Under the pieces are notes generated by a model that saw only the letters and a program-made list of their open reading frames with translations, was not told where the DNA came from and searched no databases. The translations under genes and the position numbers were made by a program. Below are positions 2,272 to 29,400 of a stretch of DNA of 64,000 nt, one piece after another (position 1 is the first letter of the stretch; each line of letters starts with the position of its first letter). Source of the stretch: Camelus ferus (taxonomy: Eukaryota); the NCBI RefSeq assembly GCF_009834535.1, contig NC_045715.1:20150001-20214000 (forward strand), written 5' to 3'.

Positions 2272-2942
2272 CTCTTCACAGAGGTCCTCCGGGATCAAGG
2301 GGACCAATAATCCCACCGCTGCTGAGTCTCCCACCTCCTCCCCGGGGCAGAGGCCCAATTCGGGGAGGCCTAGGCCCCAGGTCTGGCCCATACGGTCGTG
2401 GTTGGTGGGGAGTCAATGCTGAACCTCCTTTTCCTGGACCAGGCCATGGAGGTCCCTCCAGGGGAGGCTTTCACAAAGAGCAGAGAAACCCTCGAAGGCT
2501 CAAAAGCTGGTCTCTTATCAAGAATACCTGCCCACCCAAGGATGGACCCCAGGTTATGGAAGGTGAGGTCCATATTCTTTATGCCTGCACACATTTACTA
2601 GCCATCACTCCCAGAGTGACCCAGTGCCCAGAATGCCTGTGGCTCTTCTCTGGGCTGTCCTTTGTCTTTTCGAAGTAGGAGTAGCCCTGAATGTTTTTTC
2701 TCCCAGGAGAAAGACTACCATTCCATAATATCTGGAAATGGTAATGAGTAGGAAATCTGTCTTCTCTGCTTTTTGTTACAATTTTTTTTTCTTCTCAGTC
2801 GCATTTTAAATTGCCTGATTTTCACTTGTTCACAGACAAATCCGACCGCCCTGTCTGCCGACACTTTGCCAAAAAGGGCCACTGTCGATACGAGGACCTC
2901 TGTGCCTTCTACCACCCAGGCGTCAATGGACCTCCTCTGTGA
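2272..2942 (+). CDS. PRR3: Proline-rich protein 3, last two coding exons (2272-2562, 2836-2942); earlier exons lie upstream of the window
   Basis: cag|CTCTTCACAGA...ATGGAAG|gtgagg encodes [11 protein letters not shown]...[22 protein letters not shown]. cacag|ACAAATCC...CTGTGA encodes the C3H1 finger [35 protein letters not shown]. Both exons begin in phase 1. Confidence 0.96.
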
Positions 2943-4114
2943 GACTGTGCCTTCCCATCCAGGCTGGAAGGAGCCCTCTGACCTAGCGGCCATACACTTC
3001 CCTAGGGCCCTGAGATGGCTACTCTGAGGTGGTTTCACTCACTACCCTCAGTCAGTGATGCCCACCCCCATCGCCACCTCCCCAACTTGGGGTCCAGAGT
3101 TGTTCCATCGCTGGTGCGCGGTGTGCACTCTTCTGATCCCGCTTCCAGAGACTCGTCTTCAGGACCCCATCTTCGCTCCATTCAACTGCCTCCTGGATCC
3201 TTTTCCCCCTCGCCGACTGACTGCGGAACAGGAAACCTCTTCGGTGCTGTTTCTTGTGCATCTGTCTGCCCAGCCCCCGGGATTGCCCTGGATTCCTGAG
3301 AGCCCTGGAGCAGTTTCCTGCCAATCCCTTCTTCCAGCTACTTGTTTGAAGTTCTTTTTACGTGACAGCCCCTACCCGCAATGTTGTCAGCTGCTCCGTG
3401 ACACTCATCAGGTCGTCTGACCTGGGGTCAAGTGTGGATGGCTGGTCCAGAGTTACTCCCCGAGAGACCACTCTCCCTGCTTCTGGATTTCGTAGTTTCT
3501 GCGTCAGTAGCATGATCCCCACCGCTATGGTCTGTGATCACTGTGCTTTGTGAAACTGTGCATCCCCTGTAGCCTTTCTCGGTGTCTGTGGCATTTTTGT
3601 GACTTCCCAACACTAGAGTAAGTTTTTCTGCCAAAACGAGTGGGGCCGTCGGTGCCCTCTAGACTTCCCCACCTCCCAACATGGGAGAATTGTGAAACTT
3701 CACACAAGACTGCCTCCCTGGTCCTGCCCGTTCCTCTCCTGGTGTCGGTTTCTCTGGGTTTGACACAGGCCCGAGAGATGTCCTTCAAAGCCTCAGATGG
3801 GCCTACCCTGTCTCCTCTTCCAGCCCATTTTAGTTAGACTACTTCATTGTGAGGCCACCAGCCCTTTCGTTTGAATTCTGTGAATCTCCACCTGGGCTAC
3901 CTGTGGGTGGAACTTGGATAGTACTGTCGCCCTCTTCCAACCTTCTTCCCCTGCATCCCTGGCACTGGTTGTTTTCTGTGAAAACGGCAGTGAACAGGCT
4001 CAGTTTTGAACTGGCCCTGAGGAAATGGGTCAGGAGTTGTGTGGGCAAGAGGGAGGGGTGAGAGCCGTTGGAGAACTGAGAATGAATTTTTTTTTAACAT
4101 TTTTTTACATTAGT

Positions 4115-4120
4115 AATAAA
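4115..4120 (+). terminator. Probable PRR3 polyadenylation signal (AATAAA)
   Basis: AATAAA about 1.17 kb after the stop codon, preceded by U-rich sequence and followed by U/GU-rich sequence. Confidence 0.6.
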
Positions 4121-5078
4121 CACAGTGGAAACAAACATTTTCTTTAATCCCTGTGTTCCAGTCATCTCTGGAAATGCAGATGAGGCTGTGCTTGGAGTCA
4201 GTTTATTCTTCACTTGTGTTCGTATGCAGTGGTGATAGAAGTTTCTTCCAGTCTGAAGGAACCCATTATCCTATGGGCATCAACTGGAGCAGGCTGCATT
4301 ACGTTCAAGGGTAAAGTTTTGTTGGAGAAAGGAAAGGCCAGGTATCCATGGAGTAATTTTTAAACATTTTACCCATGTTTATGGTTTGATGTTTATGGAG
4401 TGTTAATGACAAAGCAATATGTCGATAAATATTTGTAGAGCGCCAGTGGGCCAGGCAGTATGCCAGGCACCAGAGATAACAGCCAAAACCAGTGAATTTA
4501 AGATCTACAGTGGGAGGCATGTTCATCAAGAAATCACAACTTCACGTGAAGCACTTGTCCAAAGTGCAATGAAGAAGCGAGACCTGGTGGGAGAGTATGT
4601 AATAAAGGCAGTCTGGGAAGATGGCAACGGGGACAAACTGAGGACAAGCAGAAGGTGAGGTGGGAGAGCATTGTCCAGGCAGAGGTGTTAAGAGGACGTG
4701 GGAAGAGTGGGAGGTGAGGCAGGAGGAAGAGGACCTCGACCTCTCGGCCTTGCAGGATGTAAGGGTCTTTTGGAAGTGGCAGTTAGAAGGTTACTTGAGT
4801 AGCCTGAATGAGTCGTGCTGGTGGTGTCTTGGGTAGCAGAGTGGGGAGAAAAGTGGACATTTGGAAATAAGGGATCAAAATGAAAGTATTTTAGGTTTCT
4901 CTGGGTCATTCTGGCTTGCATAACCAAGTACCCATTTAGACAGAAAGGTATTAGGAGAAAAACAGAATGCCTCTAATTGTTTTGGAATGGTTGAGTCTGA
5001 GCTGCCTTTTAAGACATTCAAGGAGAGCAATTAAGTAGTTGGGTATACAGGCTTGGTACTCAGATTAAAACTGGAGAC

Positions 5079-5224
5079 GGGGGAGGATATAGCTCAGTGG
5101 TAGAGCGCATGCTTAGCATGCATGAGGTCCTGGGTTCAATCCCCAGTACCTCCATTAAATAAATCTAATTACCTCCCCCCAGAACAAACATGAACTCCCT
5201 ACAGAATTGTTACATTAAAAATAA
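5079..5224 (+). mobile_element. tRNA-Ala-derived SINE (camelid Vic-1-like) with target-site duplication, inserted into an L2 remnant
   Basis: Head ggggaggatatagctcagtggtagagcgcatgcttagcatgcatgaggtcctgggttcaatccccagtacctcca has A box TAGCTCAGTGG, B box GGTTCAATCC and an AGC anticodon loop, but a mismatched acceptor stem. A-rich tail. TSD aaaactggagac (5067-5078) / aaaactgtagac (5225-5236). Confidence 0.85.
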
Positions 5225-5887
5225 AAAACTGTAGACATAAATCTGAGTTATCTGCAGTGTAGGTAGTGGTTGAAGCCATGAGCATGGATATATTCATTCA
5301 CTCTAAATAAACACCTACTATGCCCCAGTTTATCAGCTTTAAGTTCAGTTGTAACAGAAACCAAAATAAGTCTTAAAGCAAGATAGACGTTTATTATTCA
5401 AGTCAAGAGGTCATACAACACTTGTGTGACAATCATGCCACCACAAGGTCCTCAGGTATTCAGAACATCTCCTCCCCCCAGCCCTCAGCTCCATGATTCT
5501 TGGGGTCAGACCCTCCTAGTCACAGTCTGAAGTGAAGCTCTAGCTTGTTTATTTATCCTCCAAGCCTCAGGATGGAGGAAGGGCAGAGGAAATTACCAAG
5601 CTAACCTACATGTTAACATGTTACTGGCCATAACTTAGTCCTGTGGCCAATACCTAGCTGCCAGTGAGGCTTGAAAAGTACTCTTCATCAGGCAGCCACG
5701 TGCTAAGCAAACAATTGGCTTTTCAGCGCCAATGTGTAAAAACATTAGGGTAGGATGAAATCCTCAACCAGCACCTCCCTGCTAAACCTTGGGCATGCAA
5801 TAAGAGAATAACACAGTAAATGTGTCAATGCCCTCCAGCCAGAGACCACACAGGAACCATCTATAGTTAAACAAAGGTGGGTCTGTC

Positions 5888-6083
5888 ACCTGCAGAGATC
5901 TCATTAAGAGAGGATTAGGAATGATAGGATTAGGGGTTTATGTTAGGTGATTTGGGGGAAGATTCAGGGAAGTGGGGAATCTGGGTTTATAACCTGCAGA
6001 GATCTCATTAAGAGGGAGGGATGACAGGATTAGGGTTTGTGTTAGGTGATTTGGGGGAAGATTGAAGGAAGTGGGGATTTGGT
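5888..6083. repeat. Two-copy ~104-bp tandem duplication inside an LTR-like segment
   Basis: Units start at 5888 and 5992 with acctgcagagatctcattaagag and share ttaggtgatttgggggaagatt and gaagtgggga. Confidence 0.85.
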
Positions 6084-6298
6084 CTATATTGGGTGCTTAC
6101 AGGCAGGGGGTGCATTTCTATGTACATTTTAGTAGTCATCCTTTGGTATCTATCATCCTTNNNNNNNNNNNNNNNNNNNNNNNNNNNNNNNNNNNNNNNN
6201 NNNNNNNNNNNNNNNNNNNNNNNNNNNNNNNNNNNNNNNNNNNNNNNNNNNNNNNNNNNNNNNNNNNNNNNNNNNNNNNNNNNNNNNNNNNNNNNNNN

Positions 6299-6490
6299 CC
6301 TGTAATACTGAATACAATGTAAATGCTATGTAACTAGTTATAAATACAATGTAGATGCAAGGTAAATAGTTGCTGGTCTGCAGCAAATTTAAGTTTTGCA
6401 TTTTGGAATTTTCTGGATATATTTTTTCCCCTAGCATTTCAATCCTAGGTTAGTTGAATCCGAAAATGTGGCAGCTGTAGACACGGAGTC
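6299..6490. mobile_element. DNA-transposon remnant (MER2/Tigger-like)
   Basis: aatacaatgtaaatgctatgtaa and ggttagttgaatcc...tgtgg...gacacggag resemble the MER2 consensus as recalled. Abuts an N gap. Confidence 0.55.
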
Positions 6491-7169
6491 TCATCCAGAG
6501 AGGAGGAATGAAACATGGCAAAAAAGCAGCCAGGACTCATTTTGGCTGAGAGGGACCTATTTAGCATTTATGGTTTGTTTAGTGACCTTGTTTTTTGTCT
6601 GCGCTTTGACAAGGTTATAGACTTTGTCTTAACCTCATCACAGTCACAGATTGGCCTTGTCTGACATTGGTGTTCTGTGAGGTTATGTTCAATGTGAGAA
6701 CATCACAGCCTTGATGTGAGGGCCAGGTCAGCTCTTGGCAACACCAAGGCCTAACTGTTAGTGTCAGGCCAGTTCCCAGTTGTCAGGGGCTGTTCTTCCT
6801 CAAAGGTAAGCAAATGAATAATTACAGGTTGTGATTAGTGATATAAAGAACATAATGGGGCACTAGAGAGAGGATAATGGTTGGGGGCTACGTAAGATGT
6901 GGTTAGGATAGACCTCGCCAAGGAGTCTGTAGCTGAAATCACCTGAGAGTGTCAAATGGGAAGACAAGAGGGCCTAGGAATTAGCCTAGAGGAAAGCTGA
7001 TATTTAATGGCCAAGGGAAGAAGGACAAGGATGAGCCTGACAAGGAGACTAAGGCGGGATGGCTAGAGAGGCAGGGAGAGATCTTTAGAGTGTGGCATAT
7101 TCTGGTTGCTAGCTCCATGCCGGGTACCATGCTAAGTTCTTCCCATTCATTGTCTTATTTAAGCCTTAC

Positions 7170-8050
7170 ATTCATCCAGTGAATACTCAGTGCCTATTCT
7201 GGGCCAGGCCCTGGGATGTATCAGTGAAAAAGACCAAATTCGGGCCCATATAGTGCTTTAGTCTATTGGGGATAATAGGCAATAAATGAGCTCTACCACT
7301 GGGCTCTATTACCCAGTAATATAATCTTAAGACATAAATGCTGTGAAGAAAAACAGTGAGGGAAGAGGCTAGAGAGTGACAGAAGGAAGAAAACAGGTCA
7401 TTACTACAACAGATAGGGCTTTGAGGAGGTAACATGTGAATAAAGGCAGAAATTAAGTGAAGAGGCTATCATATGAATATCTGGAGGAAGTGCATTCCAG
7501 GCATAGGGAACAACAAGGGCAAAGGCCTGGAGGCAGGAATAAGTTTGAGAGGTTGAAGTAAAAATAGAAGGCCAGTGTGTCTAGACAGTAGGAGATGAGA
7601 TCAGGAAGTTCAACTAGAGATCTCAGAAAGGATGCTGGGTAAACAGTTGGATTCATGAGCCTGGAGTTTAGGGCAGAAGTTGGGATCAATAAGAGACATT
7701 TGGGAATCTTCACCAGTTATGGATGGTATTTAAAGGCATGAGACAAAGAAGAGTGTCAAAGATTGAGGCTGGAGGCACTTGAACATTTAGACTTCAAGGG
7801 GAGAAGTCAGGAAAGGAGAGAAAGGGAGCAGACAATGAGATGGAAAGCAAACCTGGAGAGAACTGTGCCCTTGAAGAAAGCAAAAAGGGGAGGGAGTGAC
7901 CATCAGTCAAATGCTGCTGGGGAGTGAGTAGGATAAGGACAGAGAACTGGCCCCAAACTGTTGACCTTGGCAAGAGTGGATTCAGGCAATGGTAGGGACA
8001 AAAGCATAGACTATAGTAGTTTAAGGAGAGAACGGCAGATAACAAGGCTA
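7170..8050 (-). mobile_element. Ancient LINE-2 fragments
   Basis: Purine-rich degenerate L2 text (cattcatccagtgaatactcagtgcctattctgggccagg; ggagtttagggcagaagttggg; gagaactggcc...ttgaccttggcaa). Boundaries approximate. Confidence 0.6.
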
Positions 8051-8499
8051 TTGGGAACGCCTTGCTTACACACCTATTCAGTGGTAGAATTAGAAGTGAA
8101 CCCAAATCTTGATTGTGTTGGTGATTTAATGGCTGTATACATGTCAAAACTTATCAAAGTGTACACTTGGAAGTTTATTGCCTATTTGTGCAGTTTGTCA
8201 TATCTCAATTATACTTCAGAATAGCTGTTATCAAAAAAAGGGGGGAGTGAACCCAAGGTCCACCGCATCGTGATTTCTGTTGGGCTAGAGTTCCTCCTGG
8301 TTTACACCTCTACACCTCGGGGTTTTGTGACACATCTGAACGCTAAACCGACAAGGCCTCTTCCTGAGTTGGTGGACTGCGCCTTTCTGTCGCTAACCAG
8401 ACGTAAGGGGCAGGCAGAAGGTAGCGTTCAGCTTAAAAAAAAAAAAGAAAAGAAAGGATGCTTCACCCTTTCGAACTAGTCGGAAATTACTACGTTCAG

Positions 8500-9200
8500 T
8501 ACTTAGTCACGGCATCGCGGAGTTCTCAGATCCTCATAAAGTCTGCTGATGCGACCGGACTAGGCGGACTCCGGTCACGCCCCTTCATTGAAGGTCACGC
8601 CCCCACTGGAAGCAGACACGCCCCCAAGATGATGGTGCGGCGCCCACGTGCACCGCCTGGGGGCGGGGTCAACTGTGTCTAGAGCCCGCCTGGTTCCGGG
8701 CCCCACGCTGCCGGAAGCGGAAATAGCGCCCGGCGCAGCTTGAGTTGCAGTAACTGCCACCGCGATGCCGAAGGCGCCCAAGCAACAGCCGCCGGAGCCC
8801 GAGTGGATCGGGGACGGAGAGAGCACGACCCCGACAGGTGAGGCTGGTAGGCAGGAAGGGAAGAAGAGAGGAAAAAGAAGAGATGGAAGTGTCCGCGTGT
8901 TTTAGGAGAGAGTCACGGGGCGCGAGACTGACCCGGCCGTGCGGGGATACTGCGCATGCGTGCAGTGGACTGGGACGAGTTTTCCCTGGCCGGAGTGCTT
9001 TTGAGGTGCGGCCGAAAGAAAAGGTGCCGGGGTGTCGCGCAAGAGCTTCAGTGAGCCTGGGCAAGAGACTAGGAAGAGCATATGGTACGGAAGGAGAGAT
9101 CGGGGAGCAATGGAGTTGTTTTTTTGGAGGTACTGCGGGTTGAACCTAGGACCTCGCGCATGCTTAGCACACGCTCTACCGCTGGGCTCTACCCCCACCC
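8500..9200 (+). promoter_or_regulatory. ABCF1 CpG-island promoter (TATA-less)
   Basis: CpG-dense. GC box ggggcgggg (about 8660), tandem ETS-type ccggaagcggaa (about 8711), NRF1-like tgcgcatgcg (8951-8960). Confidence 0.8.
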
Positions 9201-12200
9201 CAGTAAACACCTGTTTTTAACTGTGCAGTGTATCTATGGTGCTTTAGGAAGAGAAGGAAAAACTATGAAGACATCCTCCCAGACTTGAAGGTACTTCAAG
9301 GGGGAGATAAAATGGACACAAATAAGCATAGCAGGTATACAGTGACTAATTTTACATATATTGGATGCCCACTATATACCCGGTACTGTGCAGAAGAACT
9401 GGAAGCTTAGAGATGAAAGATAAGCCTTGCTTATCTAGAAAGGGCAGGTCTAGTGGAGGGGACAGAGCACTAATTGGAGGCTGACCGAGTGCAATGAATG
9501 TGCTTGAGAATGTCAAGGAACTGGAGAAGAGAGGAGCAACATCTGCTCGGATAGGGTGGGGGTGTCATCCAAGCCTCCCAGGAATTTGTGATAGCTGAGT
9601 TCATTCTTGAAGGATCAGTATGAGTTAGCAAGGGGAAGAATATTCCAAGCAAGCAGAGGATGCAGTTAGTGCAAAAGTGGAGATGTAGTTGAGCCTGGCT
9701 TGTTCCCCGTATTTTGTGACTGGTGTGATGGTGTTTGAAAGATGTGCAGGAGACAGATGATGAAAGGCTTTATACACTATTCCAAGGAGCTTAATTCTAA
9801 AGACGGTAAGAAAAAGGACCCATTGAAGTGTATAAGAAATGATTAGGCAGGGAGACCATTTAGGAGGCTCTGGTAATGATCCAGGTGAGAATGGTAAGAG
9901 AATAAGCGAAGGCAGTGAAGACTCAGAGTTACGAAGGAAGTGGCATTGACTAGAACTACATGAAGGGAGAGGAATTAAGGATGACACTCAACTCAGTGCT
10001 GTTAATTGAAAGCAGTAGTAGGCTGTAGAGCGGGGAGCCGGAAGAGATAAGATCAGCTTTTGAATGCTGAGTTGGAGATTTCTGGGGAATTTCTAAGAGG
10101 AGATGGCAAGGAGAGTTTGGTGCTTGTGGAGAGAGCTCTAGACTAGAAGTAAAGATGCGGCTGAGTGTAGTTGAGGTGTTAAATACAGGGCATCCCATAG
10201 AGAGTGTAAGCGGATTGAAGCAAAAAGAGGTAGAGGATGGGAACCCCAAAGAACCTCAACAGTTAATGGAAGAAAGGTGAGGAAGGAGGCTGAGATAAGA
10301 CTGAGAAAAGCGAGCAGCCTCTTCTCTGAAACTGGAGGCAGACCAGCAGTAGCAGGATCCCTGATGTTAAGTAACAGCAGGAGAGGAGAATTAAAAGGAT
10401 GAGGAGGTACGTAAGTGTCAGAGCGGAGATTGTAAGGTTGAAGAAAGTGCTTTATTTGGTTTTGAACTTAGGAGCTGCTTAAGTGATGTACTAAAAGGAG
10501 GAGTCATTAGAGGAGGAGAAGTGGAGGATACTTTAGCCACACTTAGCCTTTTCCTGTTCCTTGGTGATAATCCTTTCTTACACTTGAACCTGTACACAGG
10601 CTTCTCTTCCTTTGGTCAGGTGGTGTGGTTGCCTTAGTCTTTGGAGAGAAATTAGTGTTTGAGTCACTTCTCAGTGTTGTCAGGGTGAGCTGACCATTCC
10701 TTTTTCTGTACTACAGTGGGTTCTCCCTCTTAATGGTTTTAGACTTAGACTCCTTGGAATAGTGCATAAAGCCTTTCATTATTTCTGCTGCACGTCTTTT
10801 CAGTTCCATCATGCTAGTCACCCAATACAGGGACCAAATTTTGAAATGTGTTCAGGATGGAGGATGCAGATTAAGCAAAGACAGGTGTAAGCATACCTGA
10901 GAGTTAACCAAGGAGCAGGGAAAGACCAGTGTCCAGAACACAGGTATGAGTAAGGAAACAGAGGTACAGCAGAAAAGATAGGATGGGCCCTTTTAGTCTG
11001 TGAGGCCCTAAATTATAGGGATTTTCATTTGTTATCTCCAGTTTTAGGCATTGTAGATGTTCGGTGTCTGAATAAATGATTACTGTGGACTACATGGGAT
11101 TCTGGTCTGAGAATACTTAATGTGGTAGATAGCAGAAGGCCTTTGTTTTGGGGATTTTGAGGGGGGGAATGATCACAGGAGTGCTTTTGGATAGAATTGG
11201 ATAGCAGTGGATGGGTGGGATGGTTTGGGAGGTGAATGTGATAGTGGATCGGCTTGGGCATGATGAGAAATCACAAGGCTGCTGGCTGCCTCCCAGTCAA
11301 ATGTGAGTGGGAGAGGGAGTTAGATATGGTCCCTCCTTCAGGGAAACAGGGGTGGACAGAATGGAGAAGCTGAAATTTGTTCAGTCAGTAAACTTCTGTC
11401 GACTTCCCACATTGCTCCCTGGGAACATGAGCTAAATGGTCCCTCTCTAGGATGGAAGACAGACACCCAGTTGAGTGTGACACAGTGCGATTTGTGCTTG
11501 AGGTGTGAGCAGAGCAAGTGCGCCACAGACCCAGATGTTTATTGACTTACCAGAAAGCTGTGTTTCCATGGTCTGCAGGTCCCCAAAATGACACACCCAG
11601 ACTGAATTCGTAATATTTTTGTTCTACCTTTCTCCCCCATAGATGGTAGGGGTGGGGAGAGAGGTCCTTCTCTTCCAGTATATCCTGAGTTAATAACTGG
11701 TACCACTAGCCCAGCTAATTCTGCCAGCTAAAAACATAGGAGTCATCTCTAAATACCCCTTCTTACTGCCCACCTCTGCCGTCACTCTCTGGATTCTCCT
11801 CTGCCTCACACTGCCACCCTAGACCAAGCCACCATTGTCTGTCCTGTGGGGCAGTGCAAATGTCTAGGGAGTGATAGTTGAGCTAGGAAAACAGTAAAAT
11901 GGAGTGGAGGCCACTGAGAGCTTGTTAGATGAGATCAGGCTGCTTTGGAATTTGCAGATCATCATTCACAATTTCTGCTTAACCTTCTAGACAAAGTGGT
12001 GAAGAAAGGGAAGAAGGACAAGAAGACGAAAAAGACGGTAAGGCAACGAGGGGTGAGGGTGAGAGATGACTATGGGTGTTTCTGAGCAGAAGGTGGCCCT
12101 ATGAAGGCAGTGGGGGTCTGAGGGAGGGGAAGGGGTCATGTCAGCAGAGCAAGCAAGGTGGGTCTGGAGTGGCAGGTCCGTGGGCTCATGTGAGGCAGCA

Positions 12201-26414: not shown

Positions 26415-29400
26415 CTAGGGCAGGGGGGGCCCATTGACACCAGGGTGGTAGAAGGCACAGTTGTTCTCATAGCGGCAGTTGCCTTTCATCATGAAATGTC
26501 GACAAACGGGTCGGTTTGACATGTCTGTGGGAACAAGGGTGGAATAGTTAAGATAGGAAAGGGCTAAGAGGTCAATGTCACCCTCACCCCACCAGTCCAA
26601 GGCATCTTGAGAGACCTAGCCTTGGGGACTTGAGGGGAGGGCAAAAGGAAGGAACTGCCATGCATGGTGGGAACTGGACCAAGGTGACCTTATGTTCTGC
26701 CTGGCACACCCAGGGTAGTGATGCTCCCCAGAAGCTTCTGTGGGACACCAAAAGCAGTATGGGGGACAGGGAGCATACTCACCTCCTCCGTGGCTGTGGC
26801 CTCCATCATGCCCTCGGTGGCCCCCTCCTCCATGGCCAGGGCCATCATGGCCACGGTGCTCATGAGGGGGTGGCCCTCGGTGGTCGTGGCCTCGGTGACC
26901 AGGGACATCGTGAGGCCGATGGCCATGGGGCCCTCCGTGTCCAGGGCCTTCATGGGGCCGATGTCCACCGCTTCCACCCATGCCACCGCCAGGGCCTTCG
27001 TGGGGGCGATGGCCACTGCCACCGCCCATACTACCACCAGGGCCTTCATGGGGGCGATGCCCACCGCCCATGCCACTGCCAGGGCCCTCATGGGGACGAT
27101 GTCCGCTGCCACTGTTCATGCCCCCACCAGGGCCTTCATGGGGACGATGCCCTCCGCCTCCAACCATGCCTCCACCAGGGCCCCCTCGTCCATTTGGAGG
27201 TCCTCCTCCAGAGCGACCTCCTCTGGCCCCTCGGAATGGAGGAGGGGGAGGAGGAGGTTCATTTCCTCCTCGGCCACCACGGCCTCTATGGTATGGTCCA
27301 GGACCAGGTCCTGGACCTCCCCGCATTGGGCCACCCCGCATGGGGTCACCTGGGCCATCCCAGAAGGGATCACCCCCCCGGGGAGGGGGTGGGGGACCCA
27401 GGAGACGTGGACCCACTGGGCCACCAGGGCCCCCAGGGCCTCCGTGGGGACCTATTGGGGAAAAAAAGGGAGAGAGTATCAGCCTCCTGTTGCAGCTGGG
27501 GACTGCCACCTCCCACCCTAAGCCATCTCCCAGCTTTTGGTCGATCCTGTACTATTTATTACCAGGTCGAAATTAAGCAGATAAGCCCATTGCAACCTCT
27601 CAGTCACCACCTACCTGGCATAGGTCCCCCGGGTCCAGGGGGGAAGTGCTGCATGCCTTTGGGGCCCCCCGGGCCTCCTGGTGGGAAACCATTGGCTATC
27701 GGACCAGGGCCTAAGAGTCCATGTGGCACTGTTAACAAAAAAAGGAATGAAGTGGTCAGCAAGAGGATTCGAGAAGGGCAGCATGATGTCTCCCTGCTCA
27801 GGTGTGCCCAGTGGACCCCCTCAGACCAACCTGGCAAAGCTGGGCTCTCTGTCCATCTTCCCCTCCCACGGCTTGCCGCCTAGCGCCAATACCCCTGCTT
27901 CCCCCAATTCCACCGCAGGCTTCCTCTCCCAGGCCCCGGGGCTGGCCCTGGTGATTACCCAGCATCTGCTTGATCTTGTCTGAGTAGTCTGGCTGCTTCA
28001 GCAGTTCCTCTGAGGGATGACTGTTAGGGCTACCCTGTAAGGCAAGGTCATTAGGGAGTAAGGTAAACAGAGAACAAGGGTAATAACTAGCAGAGAACGG
28101 GGAGCCCAAAGAGGAAGAAGTGGGAAGGAGAGGAGGATGGAGGTGAAAAGAAATGAGATGGCGGAAAAGAGGAAGGTGGCTGGTACCATGATGGAGGTGA
28201 GGATCTCCTGGACGTTGATGCCTCCTCCTCCAGGACCCTGGGGACTCTTCCCGGCACCCATGCTTCCCATAAGATTGGCCAGAACAGGAGGCAACTTGGA
28301 ACCACCTGCCCCATCAGGTGAGCCACCAGCACCCCCAGGCTCCAGGGTCTCAACATAAGGGGTCTCATCCATGGAACACTCCTGAAAGAACAGGAGAATA
28401 ATCAGGACCAACTGAAAGAATAAAGAGAGTCTCACATCAGAGGCATTAAAATCACCATGTAGTGCTCACTCACCTCATCCAGAGGGATGAGTTTTGGGGG
28501 GACAGGCTCGTAGGGCTCAGGATCAGGCTCATGAGGACTGTTAGGAGAGCCGCAGGCAACAGAAAAAAGAATGACAGGTGATTTATTCAAGCCCTCGACT
28601 TACATCCTAATCTCCCCCACTTCCTAATTACTCCAGGGCACGTTCCCCTCACGGGCTCAATGCCCCTGGGAGTGAACCCCATTTTTGCTTACCTTTCCTT
28701 GTTCAGGAAGAGCTCCTGAAGGATCCCCTTCTCCCGCTCAGCCTGGATGTACCGCTCCTGGCTGTTGCTTCCAGGGGTGACGAGCGGCGAGGGCAGAACC
28801 AGGGGCCGGGGGCACACCCAGGGCACCTTCTCCTCCATGTTGTCGTGGCTTAGACGCCGGGCCGTCTCAAACGCATGCCGGTCTGACAGTATCTCTCGCT
28901 TAGCCGCCTCCCCGAAGTCCTTGATCTTGTTCACATTCACTGGGCAAGGAGAGAAAAGGCAAGAGGGAAAGTAAGACCACCCACGCCCCTTTCAACTCTC
29001 CATACCCCACCTATTACACAAGAAACTCAAACTCTAACCTCGCTCAGTTTCGTCCAGTTCAAAATAGAAATACTCTCTCAGTCTGCCCTCCTCAGGCCAC
29101 GTCACAGTTTTCCTCTTTCTGCCTTTCCGGGTCAGCTGGCTGGGATCTCCGGGACTCTCCACTGGCTTTGCATCCAGAGGTCCCGGCTCCAAAGCGGCTG
29201 TGAGCAAGAGAGGTTTCAGCCCAGATTCTTCCTTTCAGAAAACCCCCAAACCTAAACCAGTTTCTAAGCTCACCCGTATCCATGAGCTCTGGGACCTCAA
29301 CAGGGGGGACCGGGGTCCCTGGACGTTCTGTGTCCATAGCCTCACAAGGAGGCGCTGGCTCTGGGGAAGAAGGTTTGGCTGTGCTGGGTTCTGTGCTCGT

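Follow-up and report, generated by a model that had tools for sequence, protein, structure and literature searches.

PRR3, a CCCH zinc-finger gene of the mammalian MHC class I framework region, is probably a chimera of its neighbours ABCF1 and PPP1R10 (PNUTS)

The window analysed here, 64,000 nucleotides (nt) of the Camelus ferus genome (NCBI RefSeq assembly GCF_009834535.1, contig NC_045715.1, positions 20,150,001 to 20,214,000 of the forward strand), contains the end of the PRR3 gene, the neighbouring ABCF1 gene and PPP1R10, which encodes PNUTS. The original prediction, made from the letters alone, had taken PRR3 for a duplicate of the RNA-binding end of PNUTS that is inverted and truncated; this description holds for PRR3 exons 2-4 but is incomplete, as the first coding exon appears to derive from exon 1 of ABCF1. 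All four PRR3 coding exons are accounted for by ABCF1 exon 1 together with the last three PNUTS exons, and we consider it probable, from sequence and gene structure, that PRR3 is a chimera of the two, formed by a local duplication of DNA on the stem lineage of mammals. The two genes were predicted to face each other across ABCF1, and indeed PRR3 on the plus strand and PNUTS on the minus strand are convergent, with their stop codons 23.5 kb apart and ABCF1 (plus strand, ATG at 8765) between them. Because the window opens within PRR3 intron 2, exons 1 and 2 lie outside it and were taken from orthologues; PRR3 exon 3 of the window shares 96-98% identity with PRR3 of pig, squirrel and kangaroo rat. 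The coordinates and sequence statements that the original prediction gave for PRR3 and PNUTS all hold, including the phase of the PNUTS exon it numbered 19, the penultimate one, whose boundaries are placed here at 27451 and 26783 (Table 1).

The PRR3 finger, a zinc finger of the CCCH type (three cysteines and a histidine, also written C3H1), has its closest relative in PNUTS, well ahead of anything else among 1.84 billion proteins. The PRR3 finger was searched with phmmer against 1.84 billion representative proteins and the matches were rescored finger by finger, which gave scores of 180-204 for PRR3, 152-168 for PNUTS and 97 or less for all other CCCH fingers; no other C3H1 protein thus came as close to PRR3 as PNUTS does. 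In the window, 28 of the 35 residues encoded by the two last exons are identical, and a split Asp codon, GAC, opens both exons in phase 1 at the same residue, so that what had been claimed for this pair, down to the cag/AC acceptor and the lengths of 107 and 110 nt, was borne out in the sequence. Pfam zf-CCCH (PF00642) recognized the PRR3 exon at 30.5 bits and the PNUTS exon at 31.1 bits, with a cut-off of 20.5 bits, while the marsupial PRR3 finger (P0058, P0251; L001:12553-12654), which is one residue shorter with C-x7-C spacing (...CRHFSKGHCRYE...), scored 23.3 bits. We define here a subgroup, the PNUTS-type terminal finger, which reads RP-x-CRHF ... CRYE ... CAFYHPG-x-NGPP(L) and sits at the extreme C-terminus in a terminal exon starting in phase 1. 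PRR3 fits this definition, and the only other carriers found were PNUTS, turtle KRAB-PNUTS-like genes and one lamprey gene. The paralogous finger exons of the window are saturated at synonymous sites (proportion of synonymous differences, pS, 0.785; 15 of 34 third positions identical), and their likeness as proteins therefore stems from lasting constraint on each copy and not from a recent gene conversion. The intron and 3' untranslated sequences flanking the two exons show no similarity (13/60 and 15/60 ungapped). No solved structure was found to contain a PNUTS or PRR3 finger, the best being TTP-like fingers at ~15 bits per finger. We note that the annotated PRR3 of the devil (P0252) carries a low-quality mark and a frameshifted tail; the locus itself codes for an intact finger exon.

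Upstream of the finger, PRR3 exon 3 aligned with the first ~100 residues of the penultimate PNUTS exon at a Smith-Waterman score of 154, the alignment starting two residues past the exon start in both. Residue shuffles scored 74.5 +/- 10 and shuffles in blocks of 5, 10 or 20 residues reached at most 139, with none of 2,000 attaining 154 in either control, and the reversed sequences scored 76; the predicted alignment of these preceding exons, both phase 1-1, thus survives composition-shuffled controls. Marsupial PRR3 exon 3 scored 138 with PNUTS against shuffles of 65 +/- 9.8 (0/2000), and it bridges the gap in the eutherian alignment and adds the common landmarks PFW and GPPNG. PRR3 exon 2, with the sequence PPSLLGPPP(M/I)ANG, aligns with the antepenultimate PNUTS exon from the first full codon of both, and in the devil ~29 nt of exon 2 are in register with window PNUTS at ~80% identity, judged by eye and not computed. 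The comparison of exon 2 with this PNUTS exon, which had been suggested at the outset and was made here with orthologues, therefore found the two in register, although the match is statistically weak when taken alone. The exon starts coincide in residue and in phase for each of the three aligned pairs, and the alignments support PRR3 exons 2-4 as a probable inverted, truncated, DNA-level duplicate of the end of PNUTS. The earlier description of PRR3 as an Arg-Gly-Gly (RGG) module proved generous: just two RGG triplets (IRGG, SRGG) are kept in exon 3, along with GRG/PRG, whereas the penultimate PNUTS exon has several tight RGG boxes. A highly conserved segment found in PRR3 alone makes up the C-terminal half of exon 3.

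The match of PRR3 to ABCF1 was seen when wombat PRR3 was aligned to the Tasmanian devil locus (L001), where its N-terminus also matches the start of the adjoining ABCF1 gene. In Sarcophilus, the first coding exons of PRR3 and ABCF1 are equally long, at 24 codons plus 1 nt, and the same G precedes the phase-1 donor of both. Wombat PRR3 exon 1 shares 15 of 25 residues with window ABCF1 exon 1, ungapped from Met1 to the split Gly codon at the donor; tblastn returned this match at E = 3e-7 over six frames of the whole window, and its score of 79 was reached by none of 5,000 shuffles (24.8 +/- 4.7). At the DNA level, 47 of 73 nt are identical between the two Sarcophilus exons, which form the top blastn match between the 5' regions of the two genes (E = 6e-6). 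PRR3 exon 1 scored 78-79 with mammalian and 26 with crane ABCF1 exon 1. The crane exon has an MPK start, KQ and EEW inside and a phase-1 end, features that mark the ABCF1 copy as the older and that of PRR3 as derived. Eutherian PRR3 exon 1 measures 106 nt, lengthened by a Gln/Pro-rich insertion of 11 codons, and it also acquired a KRKK motif. Pfam found no match in ABCF1 exon 1 alone. From these comparisons, PRR3 most likely took its exon 1 from the first coding exon of ABCF1.

Because introns are kept at homologous positions and phases, retroposition is excluded and the copy was made at the DNA level. For its first coding exon, PRR3 would have copied ABCF1, its downstream neighbour on the same strand; the other three would be the final exons of PPP1R10, a gene convergent with ABCF1, copied in inverted orientation. 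Since the phase-1 end of ABCF1 exon 1 matches the phase-1 start of each of the three PNUTS exons, both reading frames would have been kept on joining, and the new gene would have come to lie head-to-head with GNL1, at the place that ABCF1 occupies in crane, with the other copy of the first exon still heading ABCF1. Such an arrangement could have arisen by a tandem duplication running from ABCF1 exon 1 to the PNUTS tail, in which the part behind exon 1 was inverted, or by a complex template-switching event. Searches of window positions 2943-8700 with tblastx and blastn for inverted ABCF1 or PNUTS exons as relics of the duplication returned one 77-nt inverted match only (5079-5154 versus 9125-9201; 82%), which pairs the PRR3-ABCF1 spacer with ABCF1 intron 1 and is most likely a shared interspersed repeat, not a relic that would favour either route.

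Table 1. Exons and motifs of PRR3, ABCF1 and PPP1R10/PNUTS (window positions, strand in brackets; a slash marks the splice junction)
Feature	Position	Size and phase	Remarks
PRR3 coding exons (Dama, Rhynchocyon)		106/63/291/107 nt; all introns phase 1	
PRR3 exon 3	2272..2562 (+)	291 nt, phase 1-1	Gly/Pro/Arg-rich; homologue is the start of the penultimate PNUTS exon
PRR3 last exon	2836..2942 (+)	107 nt with stop, phase-1 acceptor cag/AC	C-x8-C-x5-C-x3-H finger and PGVNGPPL tail
ABCF1 exon 1, coding part	8765..8837 (+)	24 codons + 1 nt, phase-1 donor G/GTGAGG	Proposed source of PRR3 exon 1
PNUTS last three coding exons (window)		114/669/110 nt; all phase 1	
PPP1R10/PNUTS antepenultimate coding exon	27615..27728 (-)	114 nt, phase 1-1	Counterpart of PRR3 exon 2 (63 nt, outside window)
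PNUTS penultimate coding exon	26783..27451 (-)	669 nt, phase 1-1	RGG boxes and His/Gly repeats
PNUTS last exon	26415..26524 (-)	110 nt with stop, phase-1 acceptor cag/AC	CCCH finger and PGVNGPPLP tail
PNUTS PP1-docking RVxF motif, K-TVTW	~29097..29111 (-)		No PRR3 counterpart

Many eutherians have PRR3 proteins, as do three marsupials, namely opossum, wombat and devil. In Sarcophilus, Dama (fallow deer) and Rhynchocyon (sengi), GNL1 on the minus strand is followed by PRR3 on the plus strand, with ABCF1 (+) next in Sarcophilus and Dama. The crane locus (L005) carries, in this order, ATAT1, MRPS18B, PPP1R10(+), ABCF1(-) and GNL1(+), with ABCF1 tail-to-tail with PPP1R10, and the interval between its GNL1 and ABCF1 genes, whose starts lie head-to-head 474 bp apart (L005:27486-27959), contains no PRR3; the spacing suggests a bidirectional promoter common to the two genes. 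Over its 28.8 kb this locus encodes one PNUTS-type finger only and no second. No non-mammalian PRR3-type protein occurred among the single-finger matches of the exhaustive search, nor in word-limited searches with eutherian or marsupial PRR3, and a survey of the zebrafish major histocompatibility complex (MHC) lists PRR3 as not found (PMC1309616). The Syngnathus locus has another gene order and ABCF1 runs off it, so it is uninformative for exon 1. In a tree of the region common to both proteins, PRR3 formed a clade (support 100/100) that grouped with mammalian PNUTS (94/97), and an approximately unbiased (AU) test of a topology holding tetrapod PNUTS together without PRR3 gave p 0.036. The best reading of these data is an origin of PRR3 after the mammal-sauropsid split and before the eutherian-marsupial split.

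Several observations weigh against this origin and date, and each is best seen beside the alternative that it favours. That the Gly/Pro-rich exons merely converged in composition, the finger exon alone being homologous as a single shuffled exon, we regard as very improbable: both regions are of low complexity, Pfam finds nothing in the Gly/Pro-rich regions of PRR3 or PNUTS and the exon 2 match is marginal by itself (its score is reached by 5-11 of 5,000 shuffles in eutherians and 64-112 of 5,000 in marsupials), but the exon 3 score lies ~8 standard deviations over residue shuffles, above every block shuffle and at twice the reversed score, marsupial PRR3 aligns independently and bridges the eutherian gap, and the starts and phases agree for all three exons.

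A second alternative takes PRR3 to be only the truncated, inverted PNUTS tail, with an exon 1 that arose de novo from upstream sequence and resembles ABCF1 by chance. The exon-1 match is indeed short, at 25 residues only, and weak in eutherians, where with their insertion pig gives E = 0.004 and tenrec does not rise above chance. The 5' regions of Sarcophilus PRR3 and ABCF1 show no likeness past 79 nt (exon 1 and donor), their flanks being unrelated, and as no non-coding similarity is left around exon 1 or the finger exon, the breakpoints and the order of events are beyond reconstruction. Chance would nevertheless have to supply an ungapped alignment of Met on Met with identical coding length and a donor at the same nucleotide and phase, a partner that is the immediately adjacent gene on the same strand, and the tblastn, shuffling and DNA-level results described above. 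We consider this unlikely, and copying from ABCF1 remains the most likely source of the exon.

A third alternative places the duplication earlier, in amniotes, tetrapods or before, with loss of PRR3 in birds and fish; on this view low-complexity alignment, or an old gene conversion between neighbouring inverted copies, produced the grouping with mammalian PNUTS. AU tests rejected neither a PRR3 placed outside amniotes (p 0.12) nor one placed outside gnathostome PNUTS (p 0.23), PRR3 has a long stem branch (0.83), and the tree was built with a single mammalian PNUTS and with low-complexity columns included. Dating by gene tree, as had been proposed, thus joined PRR3 to mammalian PNUTS but with AU tests that are weak. 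Moreover, absence outside mammals was read from one bird locus, one old zebrafish survey and word-limited searches, and the locus was left unread in monotremes, reptiles and amphibians. Against an older duplication stand the failure of the exhaustive search and of both PRR3 searches to return any such protein from a non-mammal, the support for PRR3 with mammalian PNUTS together with the AU result for tetrapod PNUTS, and the far closer match of PRR3 exon 1 to mammalian than to crane ABCF1 exon 1. An older duplication is therefore doubtful, if a little less so than a de novo exon 1, and we retain a chimeric origin on the mammalian stem lineage.

PRR3 is under purifying selection. The ratio of nonsynonymous to synonymous substitution rates (dN/dS) between eutherian orders, which the original prediction had proposed to compute, was 0.10-0.16 overall, 0.04-0.05 for the finger exon and 0.13-0.21 for exon 3, indicating strong constraint. 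The product, of ~190 residues compared with roughly 750-900 in the PNUTS orthologues seen, has an ABCF1-derived basic/acidic N-terminus, a degenerate Gly/Pro/Arg-rich linker and the PNUTS-type CCCH finger at the C-terminus. Some database isoforms of PRR3 (P0058, P0044) are without exon 2 or part of exon 3, and a stress-induced exon-inclusion isoform has been described that behaves as a target of nonsense-mediated decay under PERK activation (PMC13434015).

The similarities between PRR3 and PNUTS are confined to the end of the latter, where exon starts and phases, the finger, the PGVNGPPL end and a methylated histidine are shared; PRR3 lacks the TFIIS-N/Med26 domain, the KTVTW motif, the middle region, most RGG boxes and all His/Gly repeats, and it has another first exon and its own conserved segment before the finger. 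PNUTS is the nuclear targeting subunit of protein phosphatase 1 (PP1) and acts on elongation and termination by RNA polymerase II (Pol II). Pfam on full-length PRR3 (P0170, P0251) found zf-CCCH only, with no TFIIS-N/Med26 (PF08711) and no ABC_tran domain, whereas PNUTS orthologues carry PF08711 and the neighbouring ABCF1 has ABC_tran domains. The RVxF motif (TVTW) is absent from the PRR3 sequences inspected and present in window PNUTS, where it had been predicted. The N-terminal exon of window PNUTS, run alone, gave no Pfam match, so that the TFIIS-N domain of this copy rests on orthology. The region that PNUTS reportedly uses for WDR82 and TOX4 lies further upstream than the exons that were copied. 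With ABCF1 (ABC50), the marsupial first coding exon shares its length, phase-1 donor, strand and adjacency at 52-60% identity; nothing is common past exon 1, and the two ABC_tran domains of the ABCF family are missing from PRR3.

On this anatomy, PRR3 may act as a free PNUTS-type RNA-binding module that recognizes the same kind of RNA element and is unable to bring PP1, and where the two are co-expressed it could compete with PNUTS for those sites. The alternative is that PRR3 works outside the PNUTS pathway, its finger having AU-rich targets of its own in an independent role, for example in mRNA metabolism. The two fingers differ at seven of 35 residues, most of which lie in the two intervals that separate the first three cysteines, and in CCCH fingers of the TIS11d type these stretches contact bases. 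The long stem branch and the PRR3-specific, highly conserved half of exon 3 point the same way, and PNUTS has been reported to prefer poly(U) and poly(G). The motifs of PRR3 determined by RNA Bind-n-Seq (RBNS) are AU-rich, AUAAGC and UAAUUA, and specific in vitro (bioRxiv 10.1101/201996), and its RNA binding has been described as of high inherent specificity (PMC13142525). RBNS data sets are public for both PRR3 and PPP1R10 (PMC11269977); no RNA-binding motif of PNUTS was found in the literature searched. No result here argues against an independent role, which is compatible with the evolutionary account and differs from it only in the present function of the gene. We give such a role nearly even odds, and we rate competition with PNUTS and diverged targets about equal. 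In the stronger version of competition, PRR3 would be a therian-specific decoy of the PNUTS tail that occupies the same nascent-RNA elements without bringing PP1 and thereby tunes the action of PNUTS-PP1 on elongating or terminating Pol II, a proposal that we think unlikely as it stands. As part of it, the ABCF1-type first exon and the head-to-head place beside GNL1 would have brought PRR3 a housekeeping promoter as well, and with it broad expression. The homologous zinc-binding histidines of the two proteins, PPP1R10 H931 and PRR3 H180, are both ~100% methylated by CARNMT1 (PMC12275196).

The PNUTS C-terminus has been placed on foreign N-termini elsewhere. Turtle "PPP1R10-like" proteins (P0314, P0351, P0117, P0310, P0329; L002:10001-19908) combine a KRAB box (74-83 bits) with zf-CCCH, and like PRR3 they carry the same finger behind an unrelated start. 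As sauropsid orthologues of PRR3 they were rejected: they keep much more of PNUTS than PRR3 does and group with sauropsid PNUTS (91/92), which marks the KRAB fusion as an independent, younger event. At the Pangshura locus of such a gene, no neighbouring genes were found within 10 kb. A lamprey protein of 355 residues (P0156/P0155/P0133) ends in a PNUTS-type finger, 24/33 identical to that of PRR3, with a ...PGMNGPPLP tail; it is annotated as "BEN domain-containing protein 5-like" and "proline-rich protein 3 isoform X2", and Pfam finds no other domain in it. The PNUTS terminal module, recruited independently in turtles with KRAB and apparently in lampreys, thus looks to be a recurrently shuffled unit. 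In Ascaphus truei, two differing PNUTS C-termini (P0110/P0152 versus P0122/P0277) occur on a 2.7-kb contig and a larger one, and may reflect a duplicated gene or else a haplotig of the assembly; both fingers have "SDRP", as PRR3 does. Numerous further "PRR3-like" products are encoded on other chromosomes in canids, squirrels and bats, for instance in raccoon dog (P0208, P0229, P0230, P0233, P0242), arctic fox (P0182, P0184) and ground squirrel (P0209, P0256, P0257), some with degraded fingers (P0138), and are probably retrocopies or pseudogenes of PRR3.

Chimeric new genes are a known kind, among them jingwei in Drosophila and TRIM5-CypA in primates, in which one partner was retroposed. As in these cases, PRR3 unites pieces of two genes, with frames kept by compatible intron phases and purifying selection thereafter. 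PRR3 differs in that both pieces keep their introns, the donors are immediate neighbours, one of them inverted, and the gene is old, dating at least to the eutherian-marsupial split, and fixed across therians. The literature searched contains no paper stating paralogy of PRR3 and PNUTS or a chimeric origin with ABCF1; paralogue databases probably do give PPP1R10 as a paralogue of PRR3.

The account given here would trace each of the four coding exons to its source, in a gene of the MHC class I framework region that is conserved, binds RNA and has hardly been studied. It describes an unusually clean assembly of a gene from two neighbours through phase-compatible introns, for which both parents and, in crane, the empty ancestral site can still be compared, and it adds a new, clean and old case to the known chimeric genes. 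It also gives PRR3 a testable functional context, that of a PNUTS-type finger freed of the parts that dock to PP1 and Pol II and sharing a rare histidine methylation with PNUTS, and, should the decoy proposal prove true, PRR3 would represent a mammal-only layer of termination control.

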